Assembly (NCBI GenBank): GCA_964247055.1
Contig: OZ176054.1
Location: forward strand, 9,300,001-9,364,000
Reading direction: 5' to 3'
Source of the DNA: Paragordius varius
Lineage: Eukaryota; Animalia; Nematomorpha
Length of the DNA: 64,000 nt
Part shown: one piece after another, positions 14,638-63,045 of the stretch
Layout of the letters: the number at the start of each line of letters is the position of its first letter
Position numbering within the stretch: the first letter of the stretch is position 1
Program-made: the position numbers and the translations under genes
The notes under the pieces: model-generated
Told to the model about the DNA's origin: nothing
Seen by the model: only the letters and a program-made list of their open reading frames with translations
Database searches by the model: none

Positions 14638-17600
14638 ATGGCAGCTAATAAGTATGATTGGCCATTGGATGATCATGGCTATTTGAAGCATGCAATAACC
14701 CTACCGGCAAACCCGCTAAAAGATGACCCTGTCAAATATTTAATCGTTAGCAATGAATGGAAGCTACATCATACGACACTTGTGTTAGATAATAAAAAGA
14801 TCTGTTGGGTCCCTCGCAAAGGCAAAGGTTTTGCTATTGCGGACATTGTTAGCACCAAGGGTGATCAGATCACAGTTAAAGTTGATGGAGAGGTAAAAAT
14901 TTACACATTATAACATATTTTATTACACACTATTTGGTTGAATGATTTTATTTTTCAATAATATTGCTTACATTTACTTAATTCTTATTTGTTTTTCGGC
15001 CCATAAGATTGGTGTAAAAGCGCATTATTGTAAGCCATATCTGTATTTTGAATGGTTAAAGGGGTATTTATTTCACATGTTAGTAGCCATGTATGATATT
15101 TTTTGTTTTTATTTGCATCATTTTTGACAAGAGTGTTAGATATTAAACCAATAAAAATTGCAAAAAACATGTAAATTTAATACCCTTATAGCTATTTTAA
15201 AATCTATTGTAGTAAAAATATACCGAAAACAAGGGCCAGTGTTTTGAAAACAGTCTTATGTTGTTACATGAAAAATATTTTTAATATTTCTTATTGAAAA
15301 TTATTGGTTTGTTATGGGTAGTAAATTAATTCTGAAAAATTGATAAATTGATTACGTTTCAAAGCTCTCAAAGAAACAGCTTTGCTCATAAATATTTCGC
15401 AAAAAAGTTTGGGATTAAAAAAAGTTGTCACTTTGATAGGTCTTTGCCTAAATACTGAAACATTTATTTTTCGAAACAGTAGCTAGCAATGATTAATTAT
15501 AAAGAGACCTAAAAACGTTTACGATTTAAAATTGACACCATAGTTTATAAATTTTTAATTTTATCATTGTACGATTCAATCATAATTAACTCATGTATAA
15601 ATAAAATTTATTTTAAAACCAAGGTTATGTCCTTTTAAAAAATTTTAATTAATTACGGTTTCAATCTTGCATAAAATAGCTTAAAAATGCGTAAGTTACA
15701 AAAAGTTGCAAAGTTTTGTTTTTACTATTTTTATGTTTTTCTTTCAAAAATGATTTATATCATTAGATACTAGGCCCACTATTAATCGAAATGCGCTATA
15801 CATTTAAAGAACACCGTACCCGTTATTATAAAACATTATATCATAAATACTAACCTAAAATTAATTCTCAACAGTTTTATAATGCCCAATATACAATAGT
15901 TTCGGCCCTAATGTAAATTAATAAAAACTATTTAACCAAAAACGTTACTTTTAATTATATATATACAACAGCCAATTAACCCTTATTTTTAATTATATAA
16001 CTAATTTGTAATTTGCATTAGGAAATGACGATTAACAAAGATCAAGCCCAACAAGTCAATCCGGGAAAGTTTGAGAAATGCGATGATATGTCCTCCCTGA
16101 CGTTTTTGAATGATGCCAGTGTGTTGCACAATTTGCAACAAAGATACTATATTTGGATTATTTATGTAATACGTGATACAAACTCTAAATTACTTTAATA
16201 TAGATATAGATATAAATTGGCTATAAAATTTTAGTTGAATTGGATTTTTTGAACAATAAAAGTTTAATTGAGATTTTGAATATTGACTGCCACGTTAGCG
16301 ATCCAATCTGTTATCTGTAGGGAAAAAACATCACTTGATTTCCTGTCAAATACCTATATTCTATAATGCCGAATGTAAAATTTGCACAGATAAATCAAAA
16401 ATTTTATTTTTATTCCCATTACCCAATTAAAAGACAATTTTAACCTATTAATATTGATGCTTCAAATTATAGACTTATTCCGGGCTTTTTTGTGTGGCCA
16501 TCAATCCGTATCGTAGATTGCCCATTTATTCTCAAGAGGTTGTTGAAATGTTTAAAGGAAAACGTAAGACTGAAGTACCGCCTCACGTTTTCTCGATTTC
16601 TGATGAAGCATACACCAACATGTTATCAAGTAAACATTCTCAAATATTTTTAATTGCATGGCTACGAAAAATATATTGCAAATAAACATAATTTATATTT
16701 TTTATTTCCAAAGCATATATATATTATATGATTTTACAGATCGGGAAAATCAATCTATATTGATCACGTAAGTTTTTGGATTGCAAGTTATTTTTCCAAA
16801 GAGTTAAGTGGTATCAAAATATTAGTTAGTTTAAAATGAAACAAAATTTACTAAAATGCCATTTGTCTAGTTTTGTTAATGTGCCATGTATTGTCTATGT
16901 TATAATTTTATTGTCTGTCTATCCCTTTTGAATTTAAGCGGAGAAAGTGGTGCTGGGAAAACGGAAAATACCAAAAAAGTTATTCAATACTTTGCCATAA
17001 TAGCTGCTAATAAGGGCCAAATGTCAGATCCTAACAGGGCCCATTTTAGTGCTGTAAGTTGTTGTTGTGTCTTTTATACGTGTTTTATCCATCGTCTTAA
17101 AAAAAATTTGTTATATATGTTATACAGTACCCACACTTTTATGTTGGTCAATTATCAACACAGTAGTCTATATATGGATAAAAAACAACGATCGTATAAA
17201 AATAAAAACTTTTTTCCTATCATTTACAAAACGACAAATTCGTTTATTTAATTTTGGACGAAATTTGTTTAATATCATACACTACAGTTGTATTGCTAAT
17301 TGACCAACAATAAAGAATGCACTGTAATTTGTCTATGTGTGTTTTGATGCCTCATGTCTCAACGCGTTTAAGTTAGGACGTAACCAAATGTCTTATTGTA
17401 TATATATAAACTATAGTTTAATATAAAAAATGCTAAAATATATTAGAAAATTAAAGAATAAAAATGAATTATTTTTATTACGTAAATTTACGAAAATTTG
17501 TAAATATGCACACAAGGTTTTTTTGACCATAAGGCATTTGATTATAAAAAAATATAAAAAATAAAAATAGTTAAAACATTACGATTTTTATAGATTGATT

Positions 17601-20600
17601 TGTCTATATGCTTTTGCTGTTTTTGAAAGTAATATTATACGATAGGTAAAAAGATAAATTAAATTTAAAACTGCAGTAAAAATTAAATCTATACAGACAA
17701 AATATAAAAAGTAGACAAATATTTTAAAAAAAGACAACCATATTATTACTTGATTCCTACATACCCTAAAAATTTTAGATATATTTATTTGAGTGTATTA
17801 CCAATTTACATTTTTATTCTCTATTTTAAACCCAAAACGATGACTTGTTTTAAAGATTTTTTGAAAATATTTACCTTTAGTTTTTATGTTTTGTCTGTCT
17901 ATGTGTACTTTAAAACATGATTTTAATTTTGATTCACCAAGTAACACAATATAATATTATAAATTTTTTACCCTTAATTTTTGATAAACAATATTTTTTA
18001 TTCAATTGCATTTTGTAAAACATATTTTTTATGTAATCCTTAATAAAGTGGTGAATCGGGTGCTGGTAAAACTGAAAATACGAAAAAGGTCATAGCCTAC
18101 TTTGCTATCATTGGTATGAACGAAGTTAAAAAAACCGACGAGAAAGTGAATATTCCGATTATAAAGTTAAACTTATATGAATGATTCACTGAACACTTCT
18201 TTCCAAATCAAGAACCTAAAAATGATATTTTAGAGCAGCTATTACATAAAATAAATATACATATGCATGTAAAACTCATGAGGCATCAAAATACGCGTTG
18301 AAGTAGTAAGTAGCCTTTTAAATGTAAGTTAAAATTTAAAATTTTGCAAAAATCATGTGTTTAGGGAACCTTAGAAGATCAAATTATTCAAGCGAATCCA
18401 GTGCTTGAAGCCTTTGGAAATGCTAAAACTATAAGGAATGACAATTCATCACGTTTTGTAAGTTTTTATACCATAGGGGTAGGCCCTTATATTTTTATTA
18501 ATTGGAAATACGAAAAATATTTTAAATTACCGGGCTATTCCATAATATTTATACGAATTAATACCAAAATTAGAAGAATATTTTGGCCCATTTAATAACT
18601 TAAAACCAAACTGAAAAAGGAATGCATATTCCATAAATTTTCATTTATAATGTTAAAAGACCAAAAATTATTTGATGATAAATATGCCTCTTGAGTATGT
18701 CTAACCCCTATCCAATGCCAATTTGTCTTGTCTTTAATGTTTCCTCGAAACAAAACTGTTGTATGTGTCGTGTTCAGTGAATTGTTTCCATGATAATTGA
18801 TTTGATTATTGATTCTACTTTTGCTTTTTTGTTGTGTTTCCCCCTGTCTTTGAAACTAATGTGCTTAGAAAGCATCGTTAGAAGATCAAATTATTCAAGC
18901 AAATCCTGTACTAGAGGCATTTGGTAATGCCAAAACCATTCGTAATGATAACTCCTCACGTTTTGTAAGTCTTTTTTATCTTCCTCAACTTCAAACATAT
19001 CAAATTTATATGGATAATTTTCACACAAATTATAACTAAACAATATAGATACTAGTTTTTAGTAGAAATATAATGATTTTTATCCTACAATCGTAAAATT
19101 TAGGGTAAATTTATCCGTATTCATTTTGGATCATCGGGGAAATTGGCTGGAGCAGATATCGAATCTTGTAAGTTTTAAACATAAAATACCACTTTTTATC
19201 AAAATCTATTGGTGAAAATGGTCAATTTTTAATTTTTTTGCAATCAAAGATTTATTGGAGAAAAGTCGTGTCATCTCTCAACAGCCACTTGAAAGATCCT
19301 ATCATATTTTTTATCAAATGATGTCTGGAGGTGTACCAGGATTGAAAGGTCTGTACCGACATACAAAATATTATAATATTGATTCTTATTAACGTATCCA
19401 TTTTTTGGTTACTTATTTCACACTATAGTAGGGCAATTGCAACACAGTAGTATATGGAAAAAAACAACAAAATGTTAAATAAACAATTATTTCCTTTCTT
19501 TTCCATACACTTCTGTGTTGCAAATTGCCCTACTATAGTGTGAAATAGCATCCATCAAAATTACTGTAATGGGTATACGAAATAAATGAAAGGGTATATG
19601 AATGATGGTTTTCATAAAATATATTTTGAATTTCGTTTTTGATTGTAAAAACAATTTGTTAAAATACCTAACCATATATTTTGGTTCCGTGCATTTTTGG
19701 ATTTATTAACTATATCCAATGTATTATTTAAGTTTGCATTCAATTGAGTTTTCCTTTTTAGAAATGTGCTTTTTGTCAAACAATGCAGCCGATTACCACT
19801 TTGTGGCACAAGGTAAAACCGCTATCGATGGCGTTGATGACGCTGAAGAAATGAGATTAACTGATGTATAAAATATTTACTATAGTAATTTATTAACTAT
19901 TTTTTTACCGAAACCTAATTAATTATTTGAATTTTAAATGCAGGAAGCTTTCAACATTTTGGGTTTTGAACAAAGCGAAAAAAATAACATTTTTAAAATT
20001 ACGGCAGCTATCATGCACATGGGTAATATGAAGTTTAAACAAAGACCCCGCGAAGAACAAGCTGAAACTGACGGAACAGATCGTATGAATATTATAAAAA
20101 TATAAAATTGATTATTAAAATCATGCAAATGTCAAAACTGAATCGATATTTTTCAGTCTAAATTATTAGCTCTATTTTTAAGAAAAAAGCCCGCTAATAT
20201 ATTACTTTTTATGAACCATCCTCGTATAAAACCATAAAATACTTTAAGAAAGCCAAATTAAATTTTTATCGGTTTAATTTGTATTTTTATAGCTGGAGAA
20301 AAAGCTGCACAGCTTATGGGCATCAATGATGGGGAAATGTTTAAAAACATATTGAAACCAAGAATTAAAGTTGGTACAGAATATGTGGCTAAGGGTCAAA
20401 ATTTGCAACAAGTAACATTTTATTGTTATCTATCTTTGAATAATCCATTTTGAATCTTGATATGATATATTATTTTATTAAAAAAATATTATTTAATAGG
20501 TTCAATATGCTATTGGATCTTTATCTAAAGCAACGTACGATCGTATGTTCAAATGGTTAGTCGCGCGTGTCAATAAAACTTTGGACACAAAACAGAAGAG

Positions 20601-23600
20601 ACAGTTTTTCATTGGTGTATTGGATATTGCAGGATTCGAAATTTTTGAGGTAAGTTTTTCACTGAATCTGCTTGAAATAATATGATAATCTGTAACCGGA
20701 TTAAAACATACCATAAGTCAATTGATATTTGAACTAACACTCTGAATAAGACTGAATTGTTTTAAATTTTGGCTTTAGTATCTTTCATGTTATATGGGAC
20801 CGTTTTGAACCGCTTTTAAATACTGCGGTTTACTTAATATAATTTTATATGGTACAATATTATCCTATATAGTTTAACAGTTTTGAACAATTGTGTATCA
20901 ATTTCACCAATGAAAAATTGCAACAATTTTTCAATCATCACATGTTTATTTTGGAACAAGAGGAATATAAACGAGAAGGTATTGATTGGGAATTTATTGA
21001 TTTCGGTTTGGATTTACAAGCGTGTATCGATTTAATTGAAAAGGTATTTGGGCTGTTTATTAATAATTATTCACTTTAAATTTGAAAAATAAATTTTCAT
21101 TCAAACTATTGGTCATGTTAGCCTTTGGGAGTATTCTCGATCCTTGAAGAAGAGTGCATCGTACCAAAAGCAACGGATAAAACATTTTTGCAAAAGGTAA
21201 TGGATACCCATTTGGGTAAATCTCCCTGTTTAGGAAAACCCAAAGTTGGAAAACATGGTACGCATGAAGTGCATATGGAAATTAAACATTATGCTGGAAC
21301 GGTATAAAAATATTTGCTTATATGATAAAAAAAATCATATCAATATGCGATATATTTTTATTTCATTTCATTAGTTTTGACATTTCAAATTATTTTTGCT
21401 TTGTGAAATTAGGTCCCCTACAACGTAGACAATTGGCTTGACAAGAACAAAGATCCATTGAACGAATCCGTGTTGCAAGTTTATGCTAAATCTCAAAATC
21501 ATTTATTGGCTGATTTGTGGAAGGATCGAGCCGGAGGCGGGGATGGTAATTTTACTTAAATTAAATTTTTTACAAAATTAAATTTCTGATTATGTATTAA
21601 TGAATCATTATATCATTAGATGAGAAGTCATCGGGTAAGAAAGGAAAAGGATCCAGTTTCCAAACAATTTCAGCCCTATACCGAGTAATTTTTTTATCTA
21701 AATTATATATCAACGGCATAAAAATAATTTTTTAACTCTAGGAACAATTAAATAAATTGATGACAACTTTGAAAAATACGCATCCTCATTTCATTCGTTG
21801 TATTATCCCCAACGAGCACAAAGCCGGAGGTAATTTATTATTTGATTCAGTAAAAATATGTTGATATTTGTATGGAACGACTGTTTATATTGTATATACG
21901 GATTATTATTATCATAGGTGAACTCGATGCGGATTTGGTTTTGAATCAATTGACTTGTAACGGTGTGTTGGAGGGTATAAGAATTTGTCGTAAAGGTTTC
22001 CCCAATCGTTTAATGTATGCCGATTTCAAACAACGGTAAAATATTAATGTTCTTTATCAAAACCATCAATTATATATAGATAAGTGTTAGCTAACTTTCG
22101 TACTTTGATAAATAGTTATACAATTTTGGCCCCACAAGTGGTTCCTAAAGAGGGATTTGCCGATGCTAAAGAAATAACGGCAAAGATTTTGAATGAGTGC
22201 CAATTGGAAACTAATGAATACAAACTTGGACACACTAAAGTTTTCTTCAAAGCTGGTATCCTTGGTCAACTTGAGGACATGAGGGATGAAAGAATTGGCA
22301 AAATTATTACTTATTTACAAGTAATATTATTACCCAATTAATTTGTCTTACAAATTTTGATAAAAGCAACAATATATATTATATGGGTGATAAAAATACA
22401 TAATTAGGCTTGGATTAGAGCGAATTTAATGAAGAAACGTTTCAAGAAATTGAAGGAACAACGTACAGCGCTGATCATTATTCAACGCAATATCCGTAAA
22501 TGGTTATTAATGAGAAATTGGTTATGGTGGAAACTTTATACTAAGGTAGGTTAGATTCGTTTACAAATGATATTTATTAAAATTAATAATTTTATATAAT
22601 AAATTTTTTTGATAATATTTTTTTAGGTCAAACCTATGTTGACAGCTGCTAAATCAGAGGAAGAAATGAAAAAACTCCAAGACGAATATGATAAATTAAA
22701 GGACGATTTTGAAAAAGAAAGTAATAGAGTGTGAATAATAAGATATATTTTTTTTAAATAAGGATTCAAAACCGTGACAATATTTTATTATTTTAAAATT
22801 CATACATTGAATATCAGGCAAATTACGCAAGGATCTTGAAAATAAAGCGGCAACCTTGACCCAAGAAAAAAATGATTTAAGGCTTCAATTAGAATCTGAG
22901 CGGGAATCTACCGGAGATTTAGAAGATAAGGCCGAATCCTTAATTAAGCAAAAAGCTGAATTAGAATCACAATTGGCTGATCTTAATGACCGTTTGAGCG
23001 AGGAAGAAGAAAATAATGCCAATTTATCTTCCACCCGTAGGAAATTGGAAACTGAAATGGTTGAACTCAAAAAGGTGTGTATGTATGTTAAATTTATTGT
23101 AATGTATGGCAGTGGTGCTCAATAAAAAAATTTAAAGGCCGCATAAAACAATATTTTTCTCAAGGGCACTGTACCATAAAATACAAAACAATATTATATA
23201 GCCTTTTGACATATAAGCAATTATTTGCATTCTAAATAATTAAATAAAAATTAAATGAATAAATTAGGGCGGTGGTTTGAGTTTCGCTGATGTATGGTAT
23301 TTATTTATTTCATTACATATAATAAATGATATGTTCTCATGCCATAATTTAGGATATTCAAGACTTAGAACTTTCCCTCCAAAAAACCGAGCAAGAAAAG
23401 CAAGCTCGTGAAAATCAAATCCGTCAAATGCAAGATGAAATGGCTAAACAGGATGAACTAATCAACAAAGTCAATAAGGAGAAAAAGAATTTGGATGAAA
23501 CTCTGCATAAAACCCAAGACGATCTGAATGCCACCGAGGATAAGGTCAACCATTTGAACAAAGTGAAAGCCAAATTGGAACAAACATTGGATGAATTGGA

Positions 23601-26600
23601 AGACAGTTTGGAACGTGAAAAGAAAGTCCGTTCTGACTTGGAAAAAGCCAAGAAAAAATTAGAACAAGACCTTAAAATCGCACAAGTATTTTAAATAAAT
23701 TAATTTAATTTTTCCATTGAGTAAAACTTCAATCTATTATTTAATGCGATGCAGGAACAAGGCACCGATTTGGATGTGGCTAAGCGAGATCTTGAAGAAA
23801 ATGTAAAAAGAAAAGACAAAGATTTAGCCAATCTTAATTCCCGATTGGAAGACGAACAAAATATGGCTGGTCAGCTGCAACGAAAGATTAAAGAATTGCA
23901 GGTTTATAATTATTTTTTATACCAAAAAATATGCGATTATATATGAAAAAAATTAATAAAAAATCTTTAAAATTGATAACAACTGGGATAAAATAAAAAA
24001 TCATACATAAATAATTGGATAGTGCAATAGCCAAATGTTTATTGTGTTAGATAGGTCTGAAATAACCTCGATATTTCATTAATCCAAGCTTGAAAGCGCA
24101 AATGTTATCGATTCAGCACAGCATTTTACAAAATATTTGCACATAAAATCTAAAGCTGTTGGTTATTTTTTTAAAAATTATCTATTAGTGTTTTTGTAAA
24201 ATGCACATATATATAGAAGCATTTATTTTTTGTGGGGAAAAATTACCTTCAAAAAAATGTTTTGTGATTTCTTACAATTACATTAAAACCACAACATAAT
24301 TTTTTGTGACGTATATGCAAGGCTAAATTATAACATATTCTTTTTTATAAAGATCTTTTGATTTTTTATTGATATACATACTATACTATTTGTATCCAAT
24401 CTTTTGTTTTAAATTTTTCGGCTAATTATTGCATTTATACCCGTTTTGCCGTCCAAGTTTGTTGGTTTTGTTATTGAGTCGCCATCAATACATATATATC
24501 CCAGATCAGCCGCCCTATTCTTAATATTCACTGCCATATTTAACTATTGTCTATTTATTCGTTTAAGTTGAATTTATCTACGAAACGTATCTATTTTGTG
24601 CCTTGTATACACCCCTAATAGTCAATAAAATTTAAGTTAAAACTAAAATATGGACCAATCCCCCGAAACCTATGCACATCATTCAACAAACAATGGAAAC
24701 GGCGATAGAAATACGCAACGTATTAGCGATAATCCTGAATCCAAACCCCAAATAACGGCTGCCATTACGGCTAACACTGGACCTGGTATAAAGGTAGCTT
24801 CTGATGTCATCGGTGTCGCACAACAACCCATTCTTAAACCTATTATTTCACATCAAGTCCACAAGGATGGAGATGGTAGACCAGTTACCGTTGTAAGTTT
24901 TGGGGACGTGAATGAAATTAAACAACAAACATATCAGGGTAATGACAAAAATGGGGAGCATAATAAAACGACAAATGGAAACCATAATGGTCATCATAAA
25001 TTTAGCGCAACAACTAATGGAACATCGAGCACGTCAACTCACAAGAATGGAAATGGAAAAGGAAGTACAACTTATTCACACATTAGTAGCAATGGCAATA
25101 CTGCTGGTGCCAGCACTTATTCATCATATTATAGCGGAGGAGGTCATCTAGGATCCTATGGTTTCGGTTACGCAGATTATTACCCAAGATTCGAGCATTT
25201 ACGAATCCCCGGGAGGGAATATCTCGTTTCATCACCGTCTGCTCGACTTTCTACGCGGAGTCGAAGGATTATCCGTGAAAGTGCAGAGATTGAGATGGGT
25301 GAAATATTGCCAAGGACTGAACGTTCCATGCTGGAAGTTTGTCATTTGTAATATTTACGTGTTTGGTGGTCGCATAAAGCGATACATTCGGAAAATTTTC
25401 ATGAATACGGAAGATATTTGGATGACAAAAAAATCTTAGCTAAAACATAACTATATTATATTATATAAACTATGTGTTGTAAAATTTATAGTATATATTT
25501 TTATGAATATCTTGTATAAAATATATCCGTTTCTTAGTAAGCAGGTATTAAATTTTTATTATATGACAATTCTAACCCACATCCCCTATCTTTTTTTAGA
25601 GTCGCATAGAAGAATTGGAAGAGGAATTAGAAACTGAACGTCAATCTAGATCCAAGGTACGATCATTGATATGTTTTTTACGCATTTATGATATTAATTA
25701 CTGGATTAGTATGCTACGAATATATTATGTTTGAATGATAGATTGATAAACAACGCGCCGAACTTTCCCGTGAATTAGATGATTTATCAGAAAGATTAGA
25801 GGAACAGGGTGGTGCCAGCGCCGCTCAGATGGAGCTTAACAAAAAACGGGAGGTTGAAATCCAAAAACTTCGACGGGACCTTGAGGAAGCTCACATGCAA
25901 CACGAATCCACCACCAATGCCCTACGCAAAAAGCACAATGATGCCGTTGCCCAAATGGGTGAACAAATTGACCAGTTGCAAAAACTTAAGGCAAAGTAGG
26001 CTATTATATATATACATTATATTATATTGATATGTTTCATGAGCATATCTATTACAAATATTTTCAATGTGTTACAACACATATCTATATAGATTAGAGA
26101 AAGAGAAATCGCAAATGAAAGCCGAGTTAGATGATCTTTCTACCGGTGGTGAACACGTAGTTAAAGCCAAAGTAACTTATTATGAATTGTCCATGCATCC
26201 CTTACTAAATAATTATGATTCGAAATTTTATTAAACTCTCTACTTTAAAATAGGCCACGGCTGAAAAAGCCATTAAAGCTATTGAAGTGCAATTAGCCGA
26301 AAGTCAAATGAAATTGGATGAAAGCATTCGCAATGTAAATGAATTGGCTTCCAGCAAAAATCGTTTACAAAATGAAAATGCCGAACTCCAACGCCAACTT
26401 GAGGAAGCTGAATCCCAGGTCAATCAACTGACTAAAGTTAAAACTCAACTTAACAATCAATTAAACGAACTCCGAAACGCTCTTGATGAAGAATCCCGGG
26501 TTAGAATTTATAAATTATTAAATTTTAATCGATATAACAAAATAACTTATCGTATGAATGCTACCCAATCATATAGGAAAAATCTCAATTAAGCTCTCAA

Positions 26601-29600
26601 CTCCGAAATGCCCAACATGAAGCAGATACCTTGAGAGATCAATTGGATGAAGAGAGTGAATCCAAGGCTGAAATCCAAAGACAATTAACCAAAATAAATA
26701 GCGAATACGCTTCCCTTCGTTCCCGTGTTGATGGTGAATCTTCGACCCGTACTGAAGATTACGAAGATACCAGGTAGTTTATTTTTTTTGTTTAATGGCT
26801 GACATAAAACAGGAGAGTCCAACACGTGGCTTTGCTGTGTGTCCAACGAAAGATAAATACCCAATATATGCTCACAAAATTTTGATAAAATTGATGCTTT
26901 TTAATCAATTTGCTAAATTAGTTCTATCTAATTGGCCACGAGCTAACAGAATTCATATATGGTTGCATTTTACAACAGTCTTATTTTTGTAATAAAATAT
27001 TTATTAATATCCATATATACAAATGCGGCCCTTTGGGTTTTCGAGTCAAAAATGTGCTGTGAATCTATTTTTGTTTGACGCCTCTGGCTTTAAATAACCT
27101 ATAATCATTGGTTTTATCCGTTTGTAAAATAAAATAAATTAGGTAAAATGTGGAATACACCCCGGGAATAATCTAAATAACTTCTTTTACAGTTATATTG
27201 CCAATCTTTTTTAACAATTTAATTATTTTTTATTTGTTTTTTTTTATAATTTAGGAAAAAACTGCAACAACGATTACAACAAGCAGAGGAAGCATTAGAA
27301 GCCGCCCAAGTTAAAATCACCTCGCTCGAAAAAACGAAGCACCGTTTAAGTGCCGAGCTTGAAGATGCGCAAGTTGATGTTGAACGTGTAAAAATTAATT
27401 AAAATTATATTGTCAAAGATATTACCGTGTTTTCAATTTTTGGAGATTAAGTTTCAGCCTTACTAAAGCAAACAAAAAATACTTATCTTAATTATACATA
27501 TATTGCCCAACTTTTTTCATTATATAACATATTCATAGGCTAATAACATGGCATCCTCGTTTGAAAAGAAACAAAAAGGATTTGATAAAACCATATCTGA
27601 ATGGAAACAAAAGGTATCCGATATTAAACGTGAACTTGATGAATCTCAAAAAGAGAATAGAAACTTGTCCACCGAAATATTCCGTTATAAGTCCCACGCA
27701 GAAGAATATGATGATACTATTGATTCTCTTAAACGGGAAAACAAAAATCTTCAAGGTGTGTAATAACATATTGTTAAATATGGTTTCGTTTATAATTTTA
27801 GGGTACACCATAATAGTTTAATCTTTTGGCAGGCATTTTTATGTATGTCGCATTACCTAATAAGGGGTTTCGCTAAGAGTTTTTAAAACTATGCGCTTTT
27901 TACAGATGAAATCAAAGATTTAGTCGATCAGATGTCAGAAGAGGGCAAATCTGTCCATGAACTCGACAAAACCCGTAAACGCCTTGAAATCGAAAAGGAA
28001 GAACTCCAAACTGCGTTGGAAGAGGCCGAAAACGCTTTGGAACAAGAAGAAGGAAAACTAATGCGTGCACAACTTGAAATTGCCCAAGTTCGCCAAGAAA
28101 TTGATCGACGTTTACAAGAAAAGGATGAGGAGTTTGACAATACCCGGTAATTATATGCCTACCCAATATTTGTATACATATATTTTGGTGGTTTTGATCC
28201 ATTGACTTAATATATACATCATTTACACGTTAAATTGTCCATAAACGATTCAGATTCATCCCCTAAACACTTCAAATTAACCCTAAAAATTTCTTATATG
28301 TTAATATAAATTATTGTTATACGAACGAAATATTTCTTTATAGCATGTATTATTCCTGTATTATGTTAATTTTAAACGAAATTTTAATTTTTAATATAAA
28401 AAAGTATGGGTAATTTTGATACTCAAAAACAATTTATTTTAGGGTGAATTTGTATAGTTCCAGTGTTTTAAATTGTTTAAAAGTCAATTTGAATTTTGAA
28501 TGGTTTATAACATTAATATATAGCAAAAACCATGCCCGTATTGTTGAAAGTATGCAAGCAAGCTTGGAAGCCGAAGTTAGAGGCAAGGCTGAAGCCCTTA
28601 AAATGAAGAAAAAACTCGAATCCGACATAAATGAACTGGAAATTGCCGTGGATCAGGCCAACAGATCTAGTGCTGAGGCAATGAAAAATATTAAGAAGTA
28701 TCAAGATCAAATTAAACAACTCCAAAGCCAAATCGAAGATGAACAACGTAATAGAGATGATGCCCGTGAACAATACAGTATGGCTGAACGACGAGCCAAT
28801 ATTCTTCAAGTTTTTTTTATCTTTTTTACACCATTAATTAAATTTTGGAAAAATATATATACACGAAACCTGTATTTATTAATTTAGGGTGAAATCGAAG
28901 AAATTCGATCAGCCTTAGAAAATTCAGAACGTCTTCGTCGTAGCCTTGAGCTCGAGCTTAGTGATGCAAATGATCGCGCAAATGACACCTCAACCCAAGT
29001 TACGGCTCTCAATGGCCAAAAACGGAAGATGGAAAGCGAATTGGCTTCGCTCAAAACTGATTTGGATGAAAGCATAACGATACAAAAGGATTTGGAAGAT
29101 AAATTCAAAAAGGTATGTATATAATAATATATTTGACACAATAATCATAAAATTTTTTTGCAATATTATGGTACATATTCATACTGTATTAATTTTAATA
29201 TTTAGAGCTTAATGGATGTTCAACGATTGGCTGAAGAATTAAAACAAGAGCAAGATCACTCATTGCAAGTTGAGAAGAATAGAAAACAAATGGAAGTTCA
29301 AATAAAGGAAATGCAAGGCCGCCTGGATGAGGCTGAAGGCAACGTTCTTAAAGGAGGCAAAAAACTTATTGCCAAATTGGAAACGAGAGTATATTTTACA
29401 AAAATATTGTTTTATTCAACCCATGCGATACAAATAATTCCAAAATTAATTTGAAAACGTTTAGATTCGTGAGCTAACTAACGAAGCTGAAGCCGCTAAT
29501 AGACGCTATGCTGAAGCTGATAAATCGGCCAAAGCTAAGGAACGCAGAATGCGTGAAATGCAATTCGAAATTGACGAGGCAAAGAAAAATCAAGCCCACT

Positions 29601-30069
29601 TCCAAGACTTAGTTGACAAAATGCAACAGAAATTGAAGATTTACAAACGTCAAGTTGAAGAAGCGGTAAAAATACATAACTTTAATATTTATAGAAATTG
29701 ATAAATGGAAATGCTCACTCAATAATTCTGTTATAATTGTAGGAAGAGGTTGCTAGCATGAACTTGGCCAAATACCGCAAACTCCAACACGAACTTGAAG
29801 AAGCTGAAGAACGAGCCGAAAATTCCGAACAAGCCCTCACCAAAATGCGGGCTAAGAATAGAAGCTCCGCTTCTGTTGGGCCACCGCCTGCTCGATTGCC
29901 TCCGGGTGTGACAGTTGTTGGAATCGGATCTGCTGTAAATTTTAATATAATAAAATTGATAGATTTACAATGTTCTTAATTATGTCCTATATATGTCAAT
30001 ATATTATGTATTTAGAGACCAAGTCCGATACCGAAATCACCACGAAGAATTATTGAAGATTTGGAATAA
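14638..30069 (+). CDS. Mhc: Muscle myosin II heavy chain, 38 coding exon positions (40 with alternatives), about 1980-1987 aa
   Basis: Exons, all GT-AG and phase-consistent: 14638-14892, 16022-16165, 16473-16629, 16740-16767, [16939-17053 or 18049-18145], [18365-18457 or 18869-18964], 19104-19167, 19250-19348, 19762-19865, 19944-20082, 20293-20411, 20500-20649, 20873-21043, 21122-21301, 21413-21545, 21620-21684, 21742-21829, 21918-22035, 22116-22320, 22408-22545, 22627-22720, 22818-23074, 23353-23685, 23755-23901, 25600-25656, 25742-25995, 26093-26171, 26254-26499, 26577-26773, 27255-27387, 27539-27755, 27906-28146, 28524-28809, 28888-29112, 29206-29388, 29465-29665, 29743-29934, 30016-30069. 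Motifs: P-loop GESGAGKT, switch I NDNSSRF, switch II DIAGFE, relay FFNHHMF, SH1 [18 protein letters not shown]/neck [12 protein letters not shown], heptad rod. Confidence 0.97.
16939..17053 (+). CDS. Mhc: Mhc alternative exon 5a (P-loop + long loop 1)
   Basis: tttaag|C GGA GAA AGT GGT GCT GGG AAA ... AGT GCT|gtaagt; encodes [38 protein letters not shown]; 115 nt. Confidence 0.92.
17123..17325. mobile_element. TA-flanked MITE in the intron between Mhc exons 5a and 5b
   Basis: Imperfect TIRs cagtacccacacttttatgttggtcaatt / aattgaccaacaataaagaatgcactg with TA on both sides. Internal sequence is related to 19414-19547 and about 32035-32215. Confidence 0.55.
18049..18145 (+). CDS. Mhc: Mhc alternative exon 5b (P-loop + short loop 1)
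   Basis: ataaag|T GGT GAA TCG GGT GCT GGT AAA ... GAG AAA|gtgaat; encodes [32 protein letters not shown]; 97 nt; same phases as 5a. Confidence 0.92.
18365..18457 (+). CDS. Mhc: Mhc alternative exon 6a (end of loop 1 + switch I)
   Basis: gtttag|GGA ACC TTA ... CGT TTT|gtaagt; [31 protein letters not shown]; 93 nt. Confidence 0.92.
18869..18964 (+). CDS. Mhc: Mhc alternative exon 6b (end of loop 1 + switch I)
   Basis: gcttag|AAA GCA TCG TTA ... CGT TTT|gtaagt; [32 protein letters not shown]; 96 nt. Identical protein to 6a after the first residues, with many synonymous differences. Confidence 0.92.
19414..19547. mobile_element. 134-bp near-palindromic MITE in Mhc intron 8
   Basis: Arms tatttcacactatagtagggcaattgcaacacag / ctgtgttgcaaattgccctactatagtgtgaaata; about 50-bp inverted repeat with TA at both ends. 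Confidence 0.75.
24650..25336 (+). CDS. Alternative first coding exon of a headless myosin-rod isoform (catchin/myorod-like), predicted to splice to the exon at 25600; about 1083 aa in total
   Basis: 229 open codons from ATG inside a 1698-nt Mhc intron. In-frame TAA 2 codons upstream of the ATG. Phase-0 donor GAA|GTTTGT matches the phase-0 acceptor at 25600 ([14 protein letters not shown]). Confidence 0.8.
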
Positions 30070-44180: not shown

Positions 44181-44681
44181 TGTTAGAGGCTAATTTGAAT
44201 AGACTTGTTAAACACACTACATTCGTTATATATCAGTGCATTAACCTATTAACTTATCTGTATACTATTATTATATTGTTATAACCTCCCATTCCCATGC
44301 CGCCCATCATGGGATATCCTCCACCACCCCATCCCATACCCATGCCATAACCGCCAAACGGACGCGTTAAACTACTCAAGCCGTAGCCAAGCAAGGCTCC
44401 ACCCAGTAAACCCGTTCCAAGGCCCGGACCACCTCCTCTGCCACTGTATTAACTTATCTGTATACTATTATTATATTGTTATAACCTTCCCACCACTTGT
44501 GATCATTATTATACTTTGAGATAATTGTATATAAGCCAACATCCCTTGATATATGTGAATACATTAAACCTAATTATCGTAAATATATATATATAGAGAT
44601 CATGATATAACGCGCAGTTGTTTTTGTGATATACAATATTTTGTGATATACAATAAATACCTTACCATCCCCAAATATTAT
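44181..44681 (+). repeat. 5' LTR (about 500 bp) with an internal 41-bp direct repeat and AATAAA at 44652
   Basis: Begins with TG and matches the 3' LTR over 99 bp. The right edge is inferred from the PBS position, and the expected terminal CA is absent. Confidence 0.7.
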
Positions 44682-44696
44682 TGGTGGCCAAGAGAT

Positions 44697-47600
44697 ATGA
44701 CAGACGAACCAATGAATATCACAGCTCAAAAATACAATAATAATAGCAATCGATACAGTAACAACAATAATATCAATCGGTTACAACATAATAAATCCAA
44801 TCGACAAACAATAATAAAATCATCTATTACATGCAAACATTGCGGTTTCACACACCCACCCAACAAGTGTCCAGCCTGGAGACGATCCTGCAACAAATGC
44901 GGAAAGCTAAACCATTTTGCGAGAATGTGTGTAGCCAAAAAACAAAGACCGCACTTCAATAGGCAATTGTCGAAGGAAGTTAACGTGGGTCATAAGGCGC
45001 TAACTCCCTTACTGATAACACTAGTAATAAACGGGTTAAAAAAAGATTTTATATATGATACCGGTTTGGACATCAGTGTAATAAACTTTGACACATGGGA
45101 GCAAATCGGTAAACCCAAGCTGCATCCGACACCCCCAGTAAAATCGTACAACAATACCACAGTGCCAATGATGGGGACGGCAAGTGTCAAAGTCCAAGTA
45201 AATGGTAAACAAATGGTCGGGGACATATGTGTCCTATGCAAAACGATGGGAATGGCCCCGCTAATCTGTGGACTGGACTGGATGGCGAAATTCCAGATTG
45301 AGATGCCACAGGTTAAAGTTAATTATCTTAAATTGAATGAGATTTGTGAAATTTTTAAAAATTTATTCGAAAATAAGTAAGGGTGTTATAAGGACCCTGT
45401 AAAAATTCGCATTGCAGCTAATGCGATCCCGAAAGTATGGCCATGTCGCAGGGTGCCTTTTCGATTAAGAGAAAAGGTGGAGAAAGAGCTGACGAGGCTA
45501 GAAAAGTTAGGCATTTTAGAACCGGTTGATCCTAACACCACACCTGTGACATGGGCCACGCCTACGGTTAATGTACTTAAACCGAATGGCGAATTAAGAA
45601 TATGTAGTGATTTTCGGGTAACGATTAATAAGTGGTTGCAAGAAGACTCCCACATAATTCCCACGTTTGATGAGTTGGTGTCGAAAATAGGTGAAGGTAT
45701 CACATTCACGAAAATTGATTTAAAAGATGCTTACCTCCAGATGCCAGTGGCAGAGGAGTGTCAACAATTGTTAACTATCTCAACACATAAGGGTTTTTTT
45801 AGATACAAACGCATGCCGTTTGGACTGGCCACGGCACCTATCATCTTCCAAAGAGTGATGGAAAAAGTGCTGGCTGAAAGTCCGGGAACTTGCGTATATT
45901 TAGATGACGTCCTAGTGACTGGTAGGACGGAAAATGAGCACATTAACAATTTAAATAACGTATTAAGTCGTCTCGATAAGGCCGGATTTAAATTAAGACA
46001 AGATAAAATAATGATAGGCGCAGAATCAGTAAACTATTTAGGATTTGAAATATCGAAAAAGGGTATAAGTCCCTGTGAAAGCAAAATTAAAGCAATCAAG
46101 GAACTAAAAAGGCCGGTAGATAAAAAGTCGTTACGTAGCTTTTTAGGTTTTTTGACATTTCATGAACGCTTTATACCAAAATTACAAATGATAGTCGGTC
46201 CCTTACATGAATTAACTAGTAAAAATACGAGATGGTATTGGACTGAGAAACATGAGAAAAGCTGGTTAGCAGCTAAGAATTTGTTAAGCGAAAAAGTGTT
46301 TTTAACACCATATAATTCGAATAGGAAATTGATAATAGAAACTGATGCGTCAGATTTAGGATTCGGATGTATTCTAAGTCATGAAATTAATAGTGAAAGG
46401 TTACCGATAGCGTATGCCTCACAAAAATGTAGCAACGCTGAAAGGAATTATTCCACGATAGAGAAGGAATTAAAAGCAATATTATTTGCGTTAAGAAAGT
46501 TTCATAGTTTCATATATGGTAGAAAATTTACAATATTAACTGACCATTTACCCTTAGTAAAGTTAATAAATAGAGATCGAAATTTAAAAGAGATTCATAA
46601 TGCTAAAATACTAAGGTGGATTAATATGATAAATGAATACGACTTTGAAATAAGTCATCAAAAAGGGGCTCAAAATAGAGCTGATTATTTATCGAGATGG
46701 CCGATTGACGAGATCGTTGCCTATGATGAAGATTATGCGGTTACCAGATATTTGAGATTTTTGAATTGTCATAACGTGCGGTTAAGCCGAGATGAAATTC
46801 GAAAAGAAACTGCATTAGATGCAGTATTACAAAAAGTAATTAAAGCGTTAAACAACCATGACTGGAGTTCTCCAGAATTAAAAAAGTTTGTAAACCGTAA
46901 AGACGAGTTGGCATATCAATATGGCTTATTAAGTTTAAATGATCGGATTGTAATTCCGAAGCCCCTCCAAAAAGAGGTGGTGAGATACCTACACAGCGGG
47001 CATAACAACGTAGAGACCATGAAAGCGATGGCCAGATTTACGTGTTATTGGCCAGAATTAGAAAATGACCTGGTAAAAGCCAGTAGTCAATGCGAATCGT
47101 GCCAACGTAGTAGGCCGAATGTCACTCAGAATTCCACGTATCAGTGGGATCATAATGTTGCTGTGTGGGAGCGTTTGCATATTGATATAGCCGGACCGGT
47201 AGACGGTTTGTATTGGTTGTTGATAATTGATAGTGCCTCGAAATGCGCAGAAGGATTTATGTTGAAAAAGGTAACCGCAGCGAATATAATCCACAAATTA
47301 GAAGAAACGTTTGCAAGGTTTGGCTTTGCAAGAGAGATTGTGAGCGATAACGCTTCATATTTCAGTAACGAGTACTTTACGTCAACATTAAGTACGTTAG
47401 GGGCGAAACATATTAAGGTTACCCCAGAGTAATGGGATGGTAGAAAGGTTAGTAGGTACAATAAAAAATAAATACAAAAGAATAAAAAACAATGGGTTAT
47501 CCACCCACGAAGCGTTTAACACTAGCTTATGGGCGTATAGAAATTCTATACACTCAACAACGAAAGAAACCCCGGCCCAGTTAATGTTTAAGCGTACCCC

Positions 47601-48072
47601 CCATACGCCCTTAACCTGGTTAAATAGTAGGGAGAGATTGTTAGATGCACCGGCCCCCCGACGGCAGTTTGCCATTAATGACCAGGTAATGATTAAAAAT
47701 GAATTAAGTCCAGGGTGGCCCGCCGGAGAGATTACGGACCGTACAGGGTTATTTTCATACAAGGTATGGGACAAGGACCGAGACAAAGTTGTGAGGAAAC
47801 ACGCTGACCAAATAGTACAACAACCACAACCACAGCCGACCACTTCCAGCAACACAAATGAGGAGGAGGTAACCACTGCCACGGATGATGGAACAATCGC
47901 TGAAACGCAACCAAACACGATCAATGCATACGAAATCGAACCAATTACTCCGACAGCCGAAAGTCCAAATAATGATAATACCCAGAAACCTGAGGCTATC
48001 TACTCCCCCGCTAAAACACAAGAACGGAGATACCCGACGAGAAGTCGGCAGAAACCTGCCCGCTTTCGTTAA
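44697..48072 (+). pseudogene. Disrupted gag-pol of the gypsy element
   Basis: CKHCGFTHPPNKC and CNKCGKLNHFARMC knuckles, protease YDTG, in-frame TAA at 45378-45380, RT KIDLKDAYLQ and YLDD, RNase H ETDAS, integrase HHCC and D,D motifs, and a frameshift at about 47432 just before SNGMVER. Confidence 0.9.
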
Positions 48073-61707: not shown

Positions 61708-63045
61708 TTATGATGATACAGGTCTAGACCAACCCCTCATTTTACTCCTAATATTTACATTCGAAAATATGATAATGTAAGGCGTCATAAAATATTTAAA
61801 TGTCAATAAAAAATATGAAATTCTTTCTAGTCTTGATTCACAATTCAGGCCAGCTACCCAAAATTTACTTTTCCACACACTAATAAAAAGCCAAGGGATA
61901 GAAATTACCAGCGTAAAAATGTTCAAAATTGTTAAAATTATGAGGAAATTTTTTATTTTGTCCGATTTTATGCGCCTGACATGATGTTCTCTTGTGCATG
62001 ATGGATCTGTGGTTGAACGATTATAAGTGGTGGGTACAACCGATTCCATCGGTAAATTTGAAGTTTGTTGAGATGATACGTTTGGTTGAGGTGATACGCT
62101 TTTAGAAACGTTTCTAAATCTTATGGACGCTTCATTAGTTATATTACAATTTTTTATCATAAAACTTGTTGTGGGCACTTGGACCTTATTTTGTTCCATA
62201 ATAATGGGAATTTCGTTTTTAATACGATTAAATTTTTTGCTTAAAGTTAATTTCGCTATAGTGTATCCGTTGGATACAATTATAAGAATATATGGTAAAA
62301 CAAATATGAGTGTTATAACAAACGCATGATATATTTGGAAATAATGTTGTAATTTTGGGTTTAAAGGTATTACTGAAAATTTCGTTGATAATTCCACATA
62401 AGTTTCTTTATCTATATAATCTTTGATGGGTTCTAGGTTATTGTAAAACGCATAAGGAATAATAAGGATGAACGATATTAACACAATAAATCCAATAGTG
62501 ATTTTGACCAATCCTAAACTATGTTTACTTTGAAAATGATGGTATTGTACGGGATAATTAATAGCAGTAAAAATATCAATGTTTGCCAAAACTATTATGT
62601 AATTGGAGGCAGAAAAGCCCACGTAGGAGACTTTAATTTTTCCAATAATAATTGCTATATAAATATGTTCGGTGTTCCTAAAGCAATCACTCCTATACAT
62701 AACACGAATTACGAAATGGGGAATAACCGTTAGACAGACCAGTAAACCCATAATACACAATGATGTAAGATAAAATCGATTGATTTTTTTATAGGAATGT
62801 CGGATTTTAAATATATCACATCGTTTAACATTTAGGGATAAAATTAGAATAATGTATCCAACAAACCCTAAAGAGAGGGCCGATGCATAAAGTACAGGGT
62901 ATATCCATTTTCCTTCTAAATCCGCGGGTGTATTAATTATGTTTATAATCGTTTCATTGGTCGGTATATGCAAAATGGTTTTATTATCATCGTATTGGCT
63001 AATGTTACTGACATTTAGGTGAACAACATTTAACGTCAAATTCAT
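61708..63045 (-). CDS. Intronless rhodopsin-class (class A) GPCR, peptide-receptor-like, 445 aa
   Basis: N-terminal N-glycosylation sequons (NLT, NVS, NIS, NKT, NET) and seven hydrophobic segments. TM3 end ANIDIFTAINYP, TM5 FVLPYILIIVSN, long ICL3, TM6 ISIPW, TM7 FMTPYIII. Confidence 0.85.
   Translation of the reverse strand: MNLTLNVVHLNVSNISQYDDNKTILHIPTNETIINIINTPADLEGKWIYPVLYASALSLGFVGYIILILSLNVKRCDIFKIRHSYKKINRFYLTSLCIMGLLVCLTVIPHFVIRVMYRSDCFRNTEHIYIAIIIGKIKVSYVGFSASNYIIVLANIDIFTAINYPVQYHHFQSKHSLGLVKITIGFIVLISFILIIPYAFYNNLEPIKDYIDKETYVELSTKFSVIPLNPKLQHYFQIYHAFVITLIFVLPYILIIVSNGYTIAKLTLSKKFNRIKNEIPIIMEQNKVQVPTTSFMIKNCNITNEASIRFRNVSKSVSPQPNVSSQQTSNLPMESVVPTTYNRSTTDPSCTREHHVRRIKSDKIKNFLIILTILNIFTLVISIPWLFISVWKSKFWVAGLNCESRLERISYFLLTFKYFMTPYIIIFSNVNIRSKMRGWSRPVSS

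Follow-up and report, generated by a model that had tools for sequence, protein, structure and literature searches.

Does the muscle myosin heavy chain gene of a hairworm encode, besides myosin itself, a headless rod protein of the kind that molluscs make from an alternative first exon? The question is raised by an open reading frame (ORF) in an intron of the gene for muscle myosin heavy chain (Mhc) in the nematomorph Paragordius varius. The window, i.e. the whole stretch of DNA that was analysed, comprises 64,000 nucleotides of contig OZ176054.1 (assembly GCA_964247055.1, positions 9,300,001 to 9,364,000, forward strand), and all positions given below refer to it. It consists of AT-rich animal DNA with a GC content of about 27%, and the Mhc gene lies on its plus strand from about 14638 to 30069. 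A first-pass annotation, made from the sequence letters, had read the ORF as the first exon of a headless catchin/myorod-like protein. We consider it likely, with a probability of roughly 0.78, that the ORF is a functional catchin/myorod-type alternative first exon of this gene, with a presumed internal promoter and a presumed splice to the rod exons.

The host intron (23902-25599) is 1698 nt long. Since the other rod introns measure 69-481 nt and the widest gap between the coding pieces of the myosin head region is about 1.1 kb, it is the largest intron of the gene, as the first-pass annotation had stated; its further statement that the ORF fills most of the intron was too generous, the share being 40%. 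The ORF (24650..25351, plus strand) starts with ATG and encodes 233 amino acids up to its own stop codon, and 229 of these codons precede the proposed donor. The TAA that had been noted 2 codons upstream (24644-46) is present and is accompanied by two more, at 24638 and 24626. The frame is closed upstream by these three stops and therefore no acceptor 5' of 24647 can bring it into a longer exon. Right after codon 229 comes a donor, GAA/GTTTGT at 25336/25337, which is in register with the phase-0 acceptor ctttttttag/AGT CGC ATA GAA at 25600, so the predicted compatibility of the two sites was borne out. Donors of the GTTT type are used elsewhere in the gene, at 23902 (GTTTAT, the 23901/23902 donor of the full-length transcript) and at 28810 (GTTTTT). 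The shared rod exons contribute 773 codons up to 29665, to which the final two exons add 64 and 17, giving 854 amino acids, a count obtained by summing the lengths of exons that were read singly and assuming the last splice to be 29934/30016. Together with the 229 residues of the first exon, which we refer to as the unique head, this yields a predicted product of 1083 amino acids, the length that had been given before.

The ORF is real and coding-like, far beyond what chance would produce. At a stop-triplet frequency of 0.072, the number of open frames as long as this one that the window should contain by chance is about 2.5e-4, and the longest open frame over 2000 shuffles of the local sequence had 168 codons compared with the 234 observed. 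The ORF has a GC content of 0.425, and the intron on its two sides has 0.26 and 0.25; the frame displays codon-position periodicity, and its GC content at third codon positions (0.31) is near that of the rod exons (0.34). The unique head is rich in Ser, Gly, Thr, Asn and His and has a Tyr patch followed by an Arg/Ser segment, much as the first-pass annotation described it (Asn/Gly/Thr/His-rich, an aromatic patch, an Arg/Ser segment). It is predicted to be mostly disordered: AlphaFold, run on the single sequence, returned a mean predicted local distance difference test score of 42 and one short helix at residues 202-212.

Searches with the whole head returned no relatives. Pfam gave nothing except a Menin match at an E-value of 6.5, the ESM Atlas feature search gave no usable match, a word-index protein search scored 0 of its 390 candidates, and an exact look-up of the 233-residue ORF found no record. 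This absence of Pfam, Atlas and database relatives is what one would see if the ORF were a chance frame or a fragment of a mobile element, an explanation that we regard as extremely improbable. The length and composition of the ORF are far from chance, no mobile-element domains were detected, the only repeat within the ORF is a minimal 19-nt hexamer repeat, and the exon has specific homology to catchin exons at the orthologous position of the gene.

Exons of molluscan catchin/myorod (Yamada et al. 2000) have been described in the Mhc genes of Argopecten, Mytilus, Crassostrea, Aplysia and Biomphalaria and in Lottia Mhc6 (Kollmar and Hatje 2014). In Figure S3 of that study the six mollusc exons have in common the motif [K/R]LSA[R/K]SKK[I/V][I/L]R[D/E]TSDL, followed by about 12 residues that include PGLK and then by LLE (MLE in Aplysia), and all of them are joined to ARIEELEEE (Kollmar and Hatje 2014). 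The worm exon closes in the same manner, with a basic motif, 15 residues that include PR (PRTERSMLE), and then SRIEELEEE of the rod. The mollusc exons were taken from the machine-read text of the figure and were scored as residue sets of 16 and 18 columns; the 16 residue sets of the basic motif were derived from the molluscs alone, and the worm was scored afterwards. The worm motif fits 12 of these sets and the four misses are all conservative. The chance expectation of such a fit within the head is 1.6e-7, or 1e-6 if the composition of its Arg/Ser-rich end is used. Among 127,906 positions scanned in the six frames of the window the runner-up scored 8, and the maximum over 20,000 shuffled heads was 10.

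The motif includes a known regulatory position. Thr141 of mussel myorod is phosphorylated by smooth-muscle myosin light chain kinase (smMLCK). The Mytilus row contains 157 residues with the initiator Met, which fits the published 156 residues of the unique catchin domain, and Thr141 is the T of LRDTSDL. Ser211 of the worm (25280-25282) aligns with this residue (RSRRIIRES compared with mussel RSKKILRDT), and on this alignment it is a candidate phospho-acceptor at the Thr141 position. The junction with the rod coincides as well: it corresponds to residue 1112 of 1949 in Drosophila Mhc and 1113 of 1935 in human MYH7, and it is the same boundary, E followed by [A/S]RIEELEEE, as in molluscs. Judged by sequence, the last ~52 residues of the unique head are homologous to the C-terminal module of the mollusc catchin/myorod exon.

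The likeness extends to the architecture. As in molluscs, the putative first exon of the worm is unique, starts with an ATG of its own and lies in an Mhc intron on the same strand. The proposed splice would attach it to the rod at the very same residue (LE followed by [A/S]RIEELEEE), with about 830-854 C-terminal residues kept, the published figure for catchin being 830. In both, a Ser/Thr-rich low-complexity stretch and a Tyr-rich patch lie upstream of the basic motif, which has a Ser/Thr at the Thr141 position and is followed by proline and an [L/M]LE exon end. The worm differs in being an ecdysozoan known in this respect from DNA alone, in the length of the head (229 compared with about 157 amino acids) and in its composition, which is Asn/Gly/His-rich whereas that of molluscs is Pro/Ala/Ser-rich. 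The spacing from motif to junction is 15 residues in the worm and 12 in molluscs.

It had been suggested that the orthologous intron of other Mhc genes be searched for such an ORF, and one was found in three of the loci (L009, L010 and L011) that we gathered via matches to the neighbouring rod exon; none was found in L001-L008. Of the latter, L001-L004 and L006-L008, which represent two kinds of animal, have no intron at the junction point, and in the insect-like L005 the intron measures just about 145 nt and contains no exon. In the three positive loci, an intron of about 1-1.3 kb lies between ...KQIKEQQ and SRIEELEEE and contains an ATG-initiated ORF that ends in ...SPSPFLSIESKRIIRQAQDPLYASAPRVSHFLYE and is directly followed by GT. 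The nearest solved chain to the Mhc rod of these loci is that of tarantula Mhc, and we refer to them as arthropod-like; Pfam has no family for their exons. A search with one such ORF retrieved eight relatives (P0121-P0128), giving nine sequences at 48-97% identity. When they are aligned, the last 45 residues prove to be the best conserved; conservation stops exactly at ...SHFLYE before the GT and gives way to divergence. Such an end at the E before the GT is what a coding exon should show if its donor lies at that point. As far as the searched papers show, these arthropod-like exons are undescribed.

The same module is found in the worm. In a MAFFT alignment the last 52 residues of the arthropod-like sequences are collinear with the last 60 of the worm at 33-35% identity, and the columns common to both are YP, Y, SPS, LS, S, R, IR, PR and the terminal E. 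With hhalign, the arthropod-like profile matched the worm head with a P-value of 3.3e-4 over 21 columns at 52% identity, and with hmmsearch the hidden Markov model of the arthropod-like exons ranked the worm ORF best of 1002 six-frame segments of the window (E-value 0.014). This profile test is independent of the mollusc pattern. The arthropod-like ORFs resemble the worm exon in that they are ATG-initiated, lie in the same Mhc intron, end in ...PRVSHFLYE followed by GT and have SSPS..LS..S.RIIR in common with it. They are much shorter, at roughly 90-100 amino acids, and have no long low-complexity region; they too would be spliced to the rod.

Several claims of the first-pass annotation can now be judged together. 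Its catchin/myorod-like reading gains support from the homologous exon end and the identical junction residue in the rod. The head had been called unrecognisable, which remains true of most of it, since that part has no relatives, but not of the last ~52 residues, which form a conserved module. The suggestion that the headless protein is the animal's own has to be given up, the module being present in molluscs and in an arthropod-like lineage.

These comparisons also bear on whether the ORF is attached to the rod. It could instead be a separate gene of one exon that sits within the Mhc intron, encoding 233 amino acids up to the TAA at 25349-25351 and never joined to the rod. Its own stop codon four codons past the proposed donor, an ATTAAA at 25547 and the lack of spliced RNA in the runs examined would all suit such a gene. 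The conserved module, however, ends exactly at the donor, both in the worm (..MLE followed by GT) and in the nine arthropod-like sequences, and the read-through tails differ; the homologous mollusc exon is known to be joined to the rod. There is no AATAAA, polyA-like hexamers after the ORF occur at no more than background frequency, and a polyA site at this place would cut short the transcripts of a host gene that is expressed at a very high level. We therefore regard a nested gene as decidedly unlikely.

The geometry of the intron allows another use of the ORF, as an internal cassette: with an acceptor inside the frame, part of it could be inserted between ...KELQ and SRIEELEEE of full-length myosin. 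Both flanking junctions are phase 0, so that any in-frame internal acceptor would preserve the reading frame. Against this, the insert, which is predicted to be disordered and contains proline, would be expected to break the coiled coil, the homologous exons of molluscs, L010 and L011 begin with their own ATG and serve (in L010 and L011 putatively) as first exons, and the ATG of the worm ORF is well placed, with stops no more than 2 to 8 codons ahead of it. A cassette thus appears very improbable.

A further alternative accepts the homology and denies the function, the exon being a relic in which the frame is still open and transcription or splicing has been lost in this lineage. Haplotype differences bear on this possibility and were compared in DNA contigs from four runs, representing at most three samples and two studies. 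The ORF contains at least 7 substitutions, and of the seven listed five affect the third position of a codon; four of the seven are synonymous, and the remaining ones amount to two replacements, Asn to Leu and Phe to Leu. Among the differences listed there are no indels in the ORF, while four of the six intron indels are in its flanks and two are farther up or down the intron; listed substitutions per base are also more frequent in the flanking intron than in the ORF. A relic would be in keeping with a head that is mostly low-complexity and without relatives, and with the absence of its words from those runs under this species label that are guessed to be RNA. A 229-codon frame, however, would not stay open at 7% stop triplets, the listed polymorphisms favour third positions and synonymous changes with no ORF indels among them, and the motif has been retained, as have the candidate phospho-acceptor and the exon end. 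We consider a relic unlikely. One of the runs (X4, a single DNA sample) has a haplotype that over 23325-25437 (2.1 kb) differs by 55 substitutions and 11 gap letters, which shows high heterozygosity or population divergence in the species.

Several observations weigh against a functional catchin-type exon, and the caution in our estimate is owed to those on RNA. In the runs that contain the stretch, no splice joints are seen in the reads and the introns are evenly covered, and for these two reasons the runs are taken to be DNA. Five other, small runs carry this species label and are guessed to be RNA; they contain next to none of the sampled words, which is a weak negative. The constraint test described above is small, with 7 listed sites, and serves as supporting evidence only. 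The donor GTTTGT is not of the strongest type. A full phmmer search with the head against 1.84 billion representatives found 0 matches, a null that is itself weak, as the best identity in that collection to the Mhc exon of this very worm is 75% and a head-plus-rod protein may be hidden in a myosin cluster; the nulls of the other searches with the head likewise count for little. The alignable part of the head is limited to its last ~52 of 229 residues. Finally, the second mollusc block, RGxSPAVLExIAxHPxLY, is undetectable in the worm, where the best fit is 7 of 18 (residues 46-63), with 0.29 such fits expected by chance. This block is also absent from the arthropod-like exons and may be specific to molluscs. 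The nearby stretch 24800-24860 (head residues 52-69) bears a weak likeness, which is not significant, to a mollusc block, VLEGIAHHPALF, and to the arthropod-like IIRQAQDPLYASAPRVSH; these residues may be a degenerate internal repeat of the module.

If the exon is indeed a catchin-type first exon, we propose the following mechanism, in which we infer the transcription, splicing, filament incorporation and phosphorylation. A promoter within the 1698-nt intron would start a transcript whose first exon encodes the 229 residues, and splicing from 25336 to the constitutive acceptor at 25600 would yield a product of about 1083 amino acids without the motor, the light-chain-binding region and the first ~270 residues of the rod. 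The C-terminal 854 rod residues would be kept, including the whole light-meromyosin part, in which the filament-assembly properties reside. Mollusc myorod shares the surface of paramyosin-cored thick filaments with myosin and twitchin, at an abundance about equal to that of myosin. Since the worm product would retain the whole light-meromyosin part, it may likewise assemble together with myosin, at the surface of thick filaments rich in paramyosin. The mostly disordered N-terminal domain would then project outwards, and the basic motif around Ser211 could act as a switch that tunes the adjacent myosin and is itself under the control of a kinase, either a myosin light chain kinase or one of the twitchin type. 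Mollusc myorod offers a parallel: when it is phosphorylated in its N-terminal domain and co-polymerised with myosin, the actin-activated ATPase is raised. That the core of the conserved module surrounds a known kinase site points to this part of the head as the functional one. The proposal predicts that hairworm muscle contains a headless myosin of ~125 kDa with a phosphorylatable head.

In the searched literature, catchin/myorod as a muscle protein is covered for molluscs only and regarded as peculiar to their catch muscle, and two comparative Mhc studies report no such exon elsewhere. As far as that literature shows, the hairworm exon is the first of the catchin type in Ecdysozoa. The sequence comparisons suggest that it was probably inherited from early protostomes, and if so the origin of catchin/myorod moves back to them. 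More tentatively, and here we hold the idea to be somewhat less probable than its negation, the catchin exon may be an ancestral feature of protostome Mhc that was kept in hairworms and chelicerate-like arthropods and was lost elsewhere together with its intron, and in hairworms a kinase-switched headless myosin may help the paramyosin-rich body-wall muscle to hold tension cheaply, in the manner of catch muscle. The thick filaments of hairworm muscle are reported to be rich in paramyosin, a protein for whose presence in Nematomorpha Swanson (1971) is cited. The module YP..Y..SPS..LS..S[K/R]R[I/V]IR....PR....[L/Y]E could be used to find the exon elsewhere.

Two other headless myosins invite comparison. 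The myosin rod protein (Mrp) of Drosophila is incorporated into thick filaments and, like the predicted worm protein, is a headless Mhc product from an alternative start. The first-pass annotation had offered Mrp as a precedent, a comparison that did not hold up, as the worm junction at Drosophila residue 1112 lies about 260 residues downstream of the Mrp start. The N-terminus of Mrp (Standiford et al. 1997) consists of a 5' extension, which lacks conservation even within the flies, and Mrp has another start point and exceeds catchin in length by about 260 residues (Kollmar and Hatje 2014). The worm exon is not an extension of the first rod exon right after the motor and IQ region, as that of Mrp is. 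Lottia Mhc8, a rod-only gene, begins at the catchin rod position, as the worm rod portion would, but it is a separate gene without a long unique exon, whereas the worm exon is nested.

The coordinates of the features are collected in Table 1.

Table 1. Features of the Mhc locus of P. varius that bear on the alternative first exon, with the corresponding exons of the arthropod-like loci
Feature	Position	Strand	Details and basis
Constitutive Mhc rod exon, end ...QRKIKELQ	23755..23901	+	Donor CAG/GTTTAT opens the host intron; splice enumeration
Host intron, 5' part; presumed internal promoter and 5' untranslated region of the headless transcript	23902..24649	+	GC 0.26
Three in-frame TAA stops (24626, 24638, 24644)	24626..24646	+	2 to 8 codons before the ATG
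Alternative first exon (putative), coding part	24650..25336	+	229 codons; ATG context aaaatATGG; predicted disordered
Conserved C-terminal module, residues 177-229	25178..25336	+	MAFFT, hhalign, hmmsearch
Basic motif, residues 199-214, compared with mollusc RLSAKSKKIIRETSDL	25244..25291	+	12 of 16 mollusc residue sets fit
Donor GTTTGT, then read-through VCHL and TAA (25349-25351)	25337..25351	+	Sequence
Host intron, 3' part, with the constitutive acceptor ctttttttag at its end	25337..25599	+	One ATTAAA (25547), no AATAAA
First shared rod exon, a micro-exon of 19 amino acids	25600..25656	+	Drosophila Mhc residue 1112, human MYH7 residue 1113
Other 13 rod exons to the stop, common with full-length myosin	25742..30069	+	Exon table
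Catchin-like first exons of the arthropod-like loci	L009:9612-10001, L010:2449-2790, L011:10001-10300		Unannotated; ENA ERZ25067493, ERZ26858887; Logan ERR10899947

The host intron has few other features. An Rfam scan found no matches in it, and Tandem Repeats Finder reported two minimal arrays, both outside its 5' part (23902-24649). In that part the haplotype differences are concentrated at 24406-24425 and 24570-24643.

Other observations concern the Mhc gene itself. The counterpart of the 19-codon micro-exon is fused with the next exon in L009-L011, and two other animals lack the intron before it. The last Mhc exon (30016-30069) encodes a non-helical tailpiece with 10 residues that resemble the basic motif of the unique head, and on sequence grounds the headless protein may have a basic site of the kinase type at either end, the two being alike. 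Farther upstream there are near-duplicate pairs of motor-domain exons (16886-17040 and 18047-18150; 18365-18460 and 18869-18965), which look like mutually exclusive exon clusters of the hairworm Mhc gene.

Outside the Mhc gene, the plus-strand stretch 44583-48072 is retrotransposon-like, with ORFs containing RVT_1, RT_RNaseH, Integrase_H2C2 and rve and a GC content that rises to 0.38. On the minus strand, 61708-63045 is a single-exon ORF of 445 amino acids with a rhodopsin-family seven-transmembrane domain (PF00001, E-value 1.5e-8).

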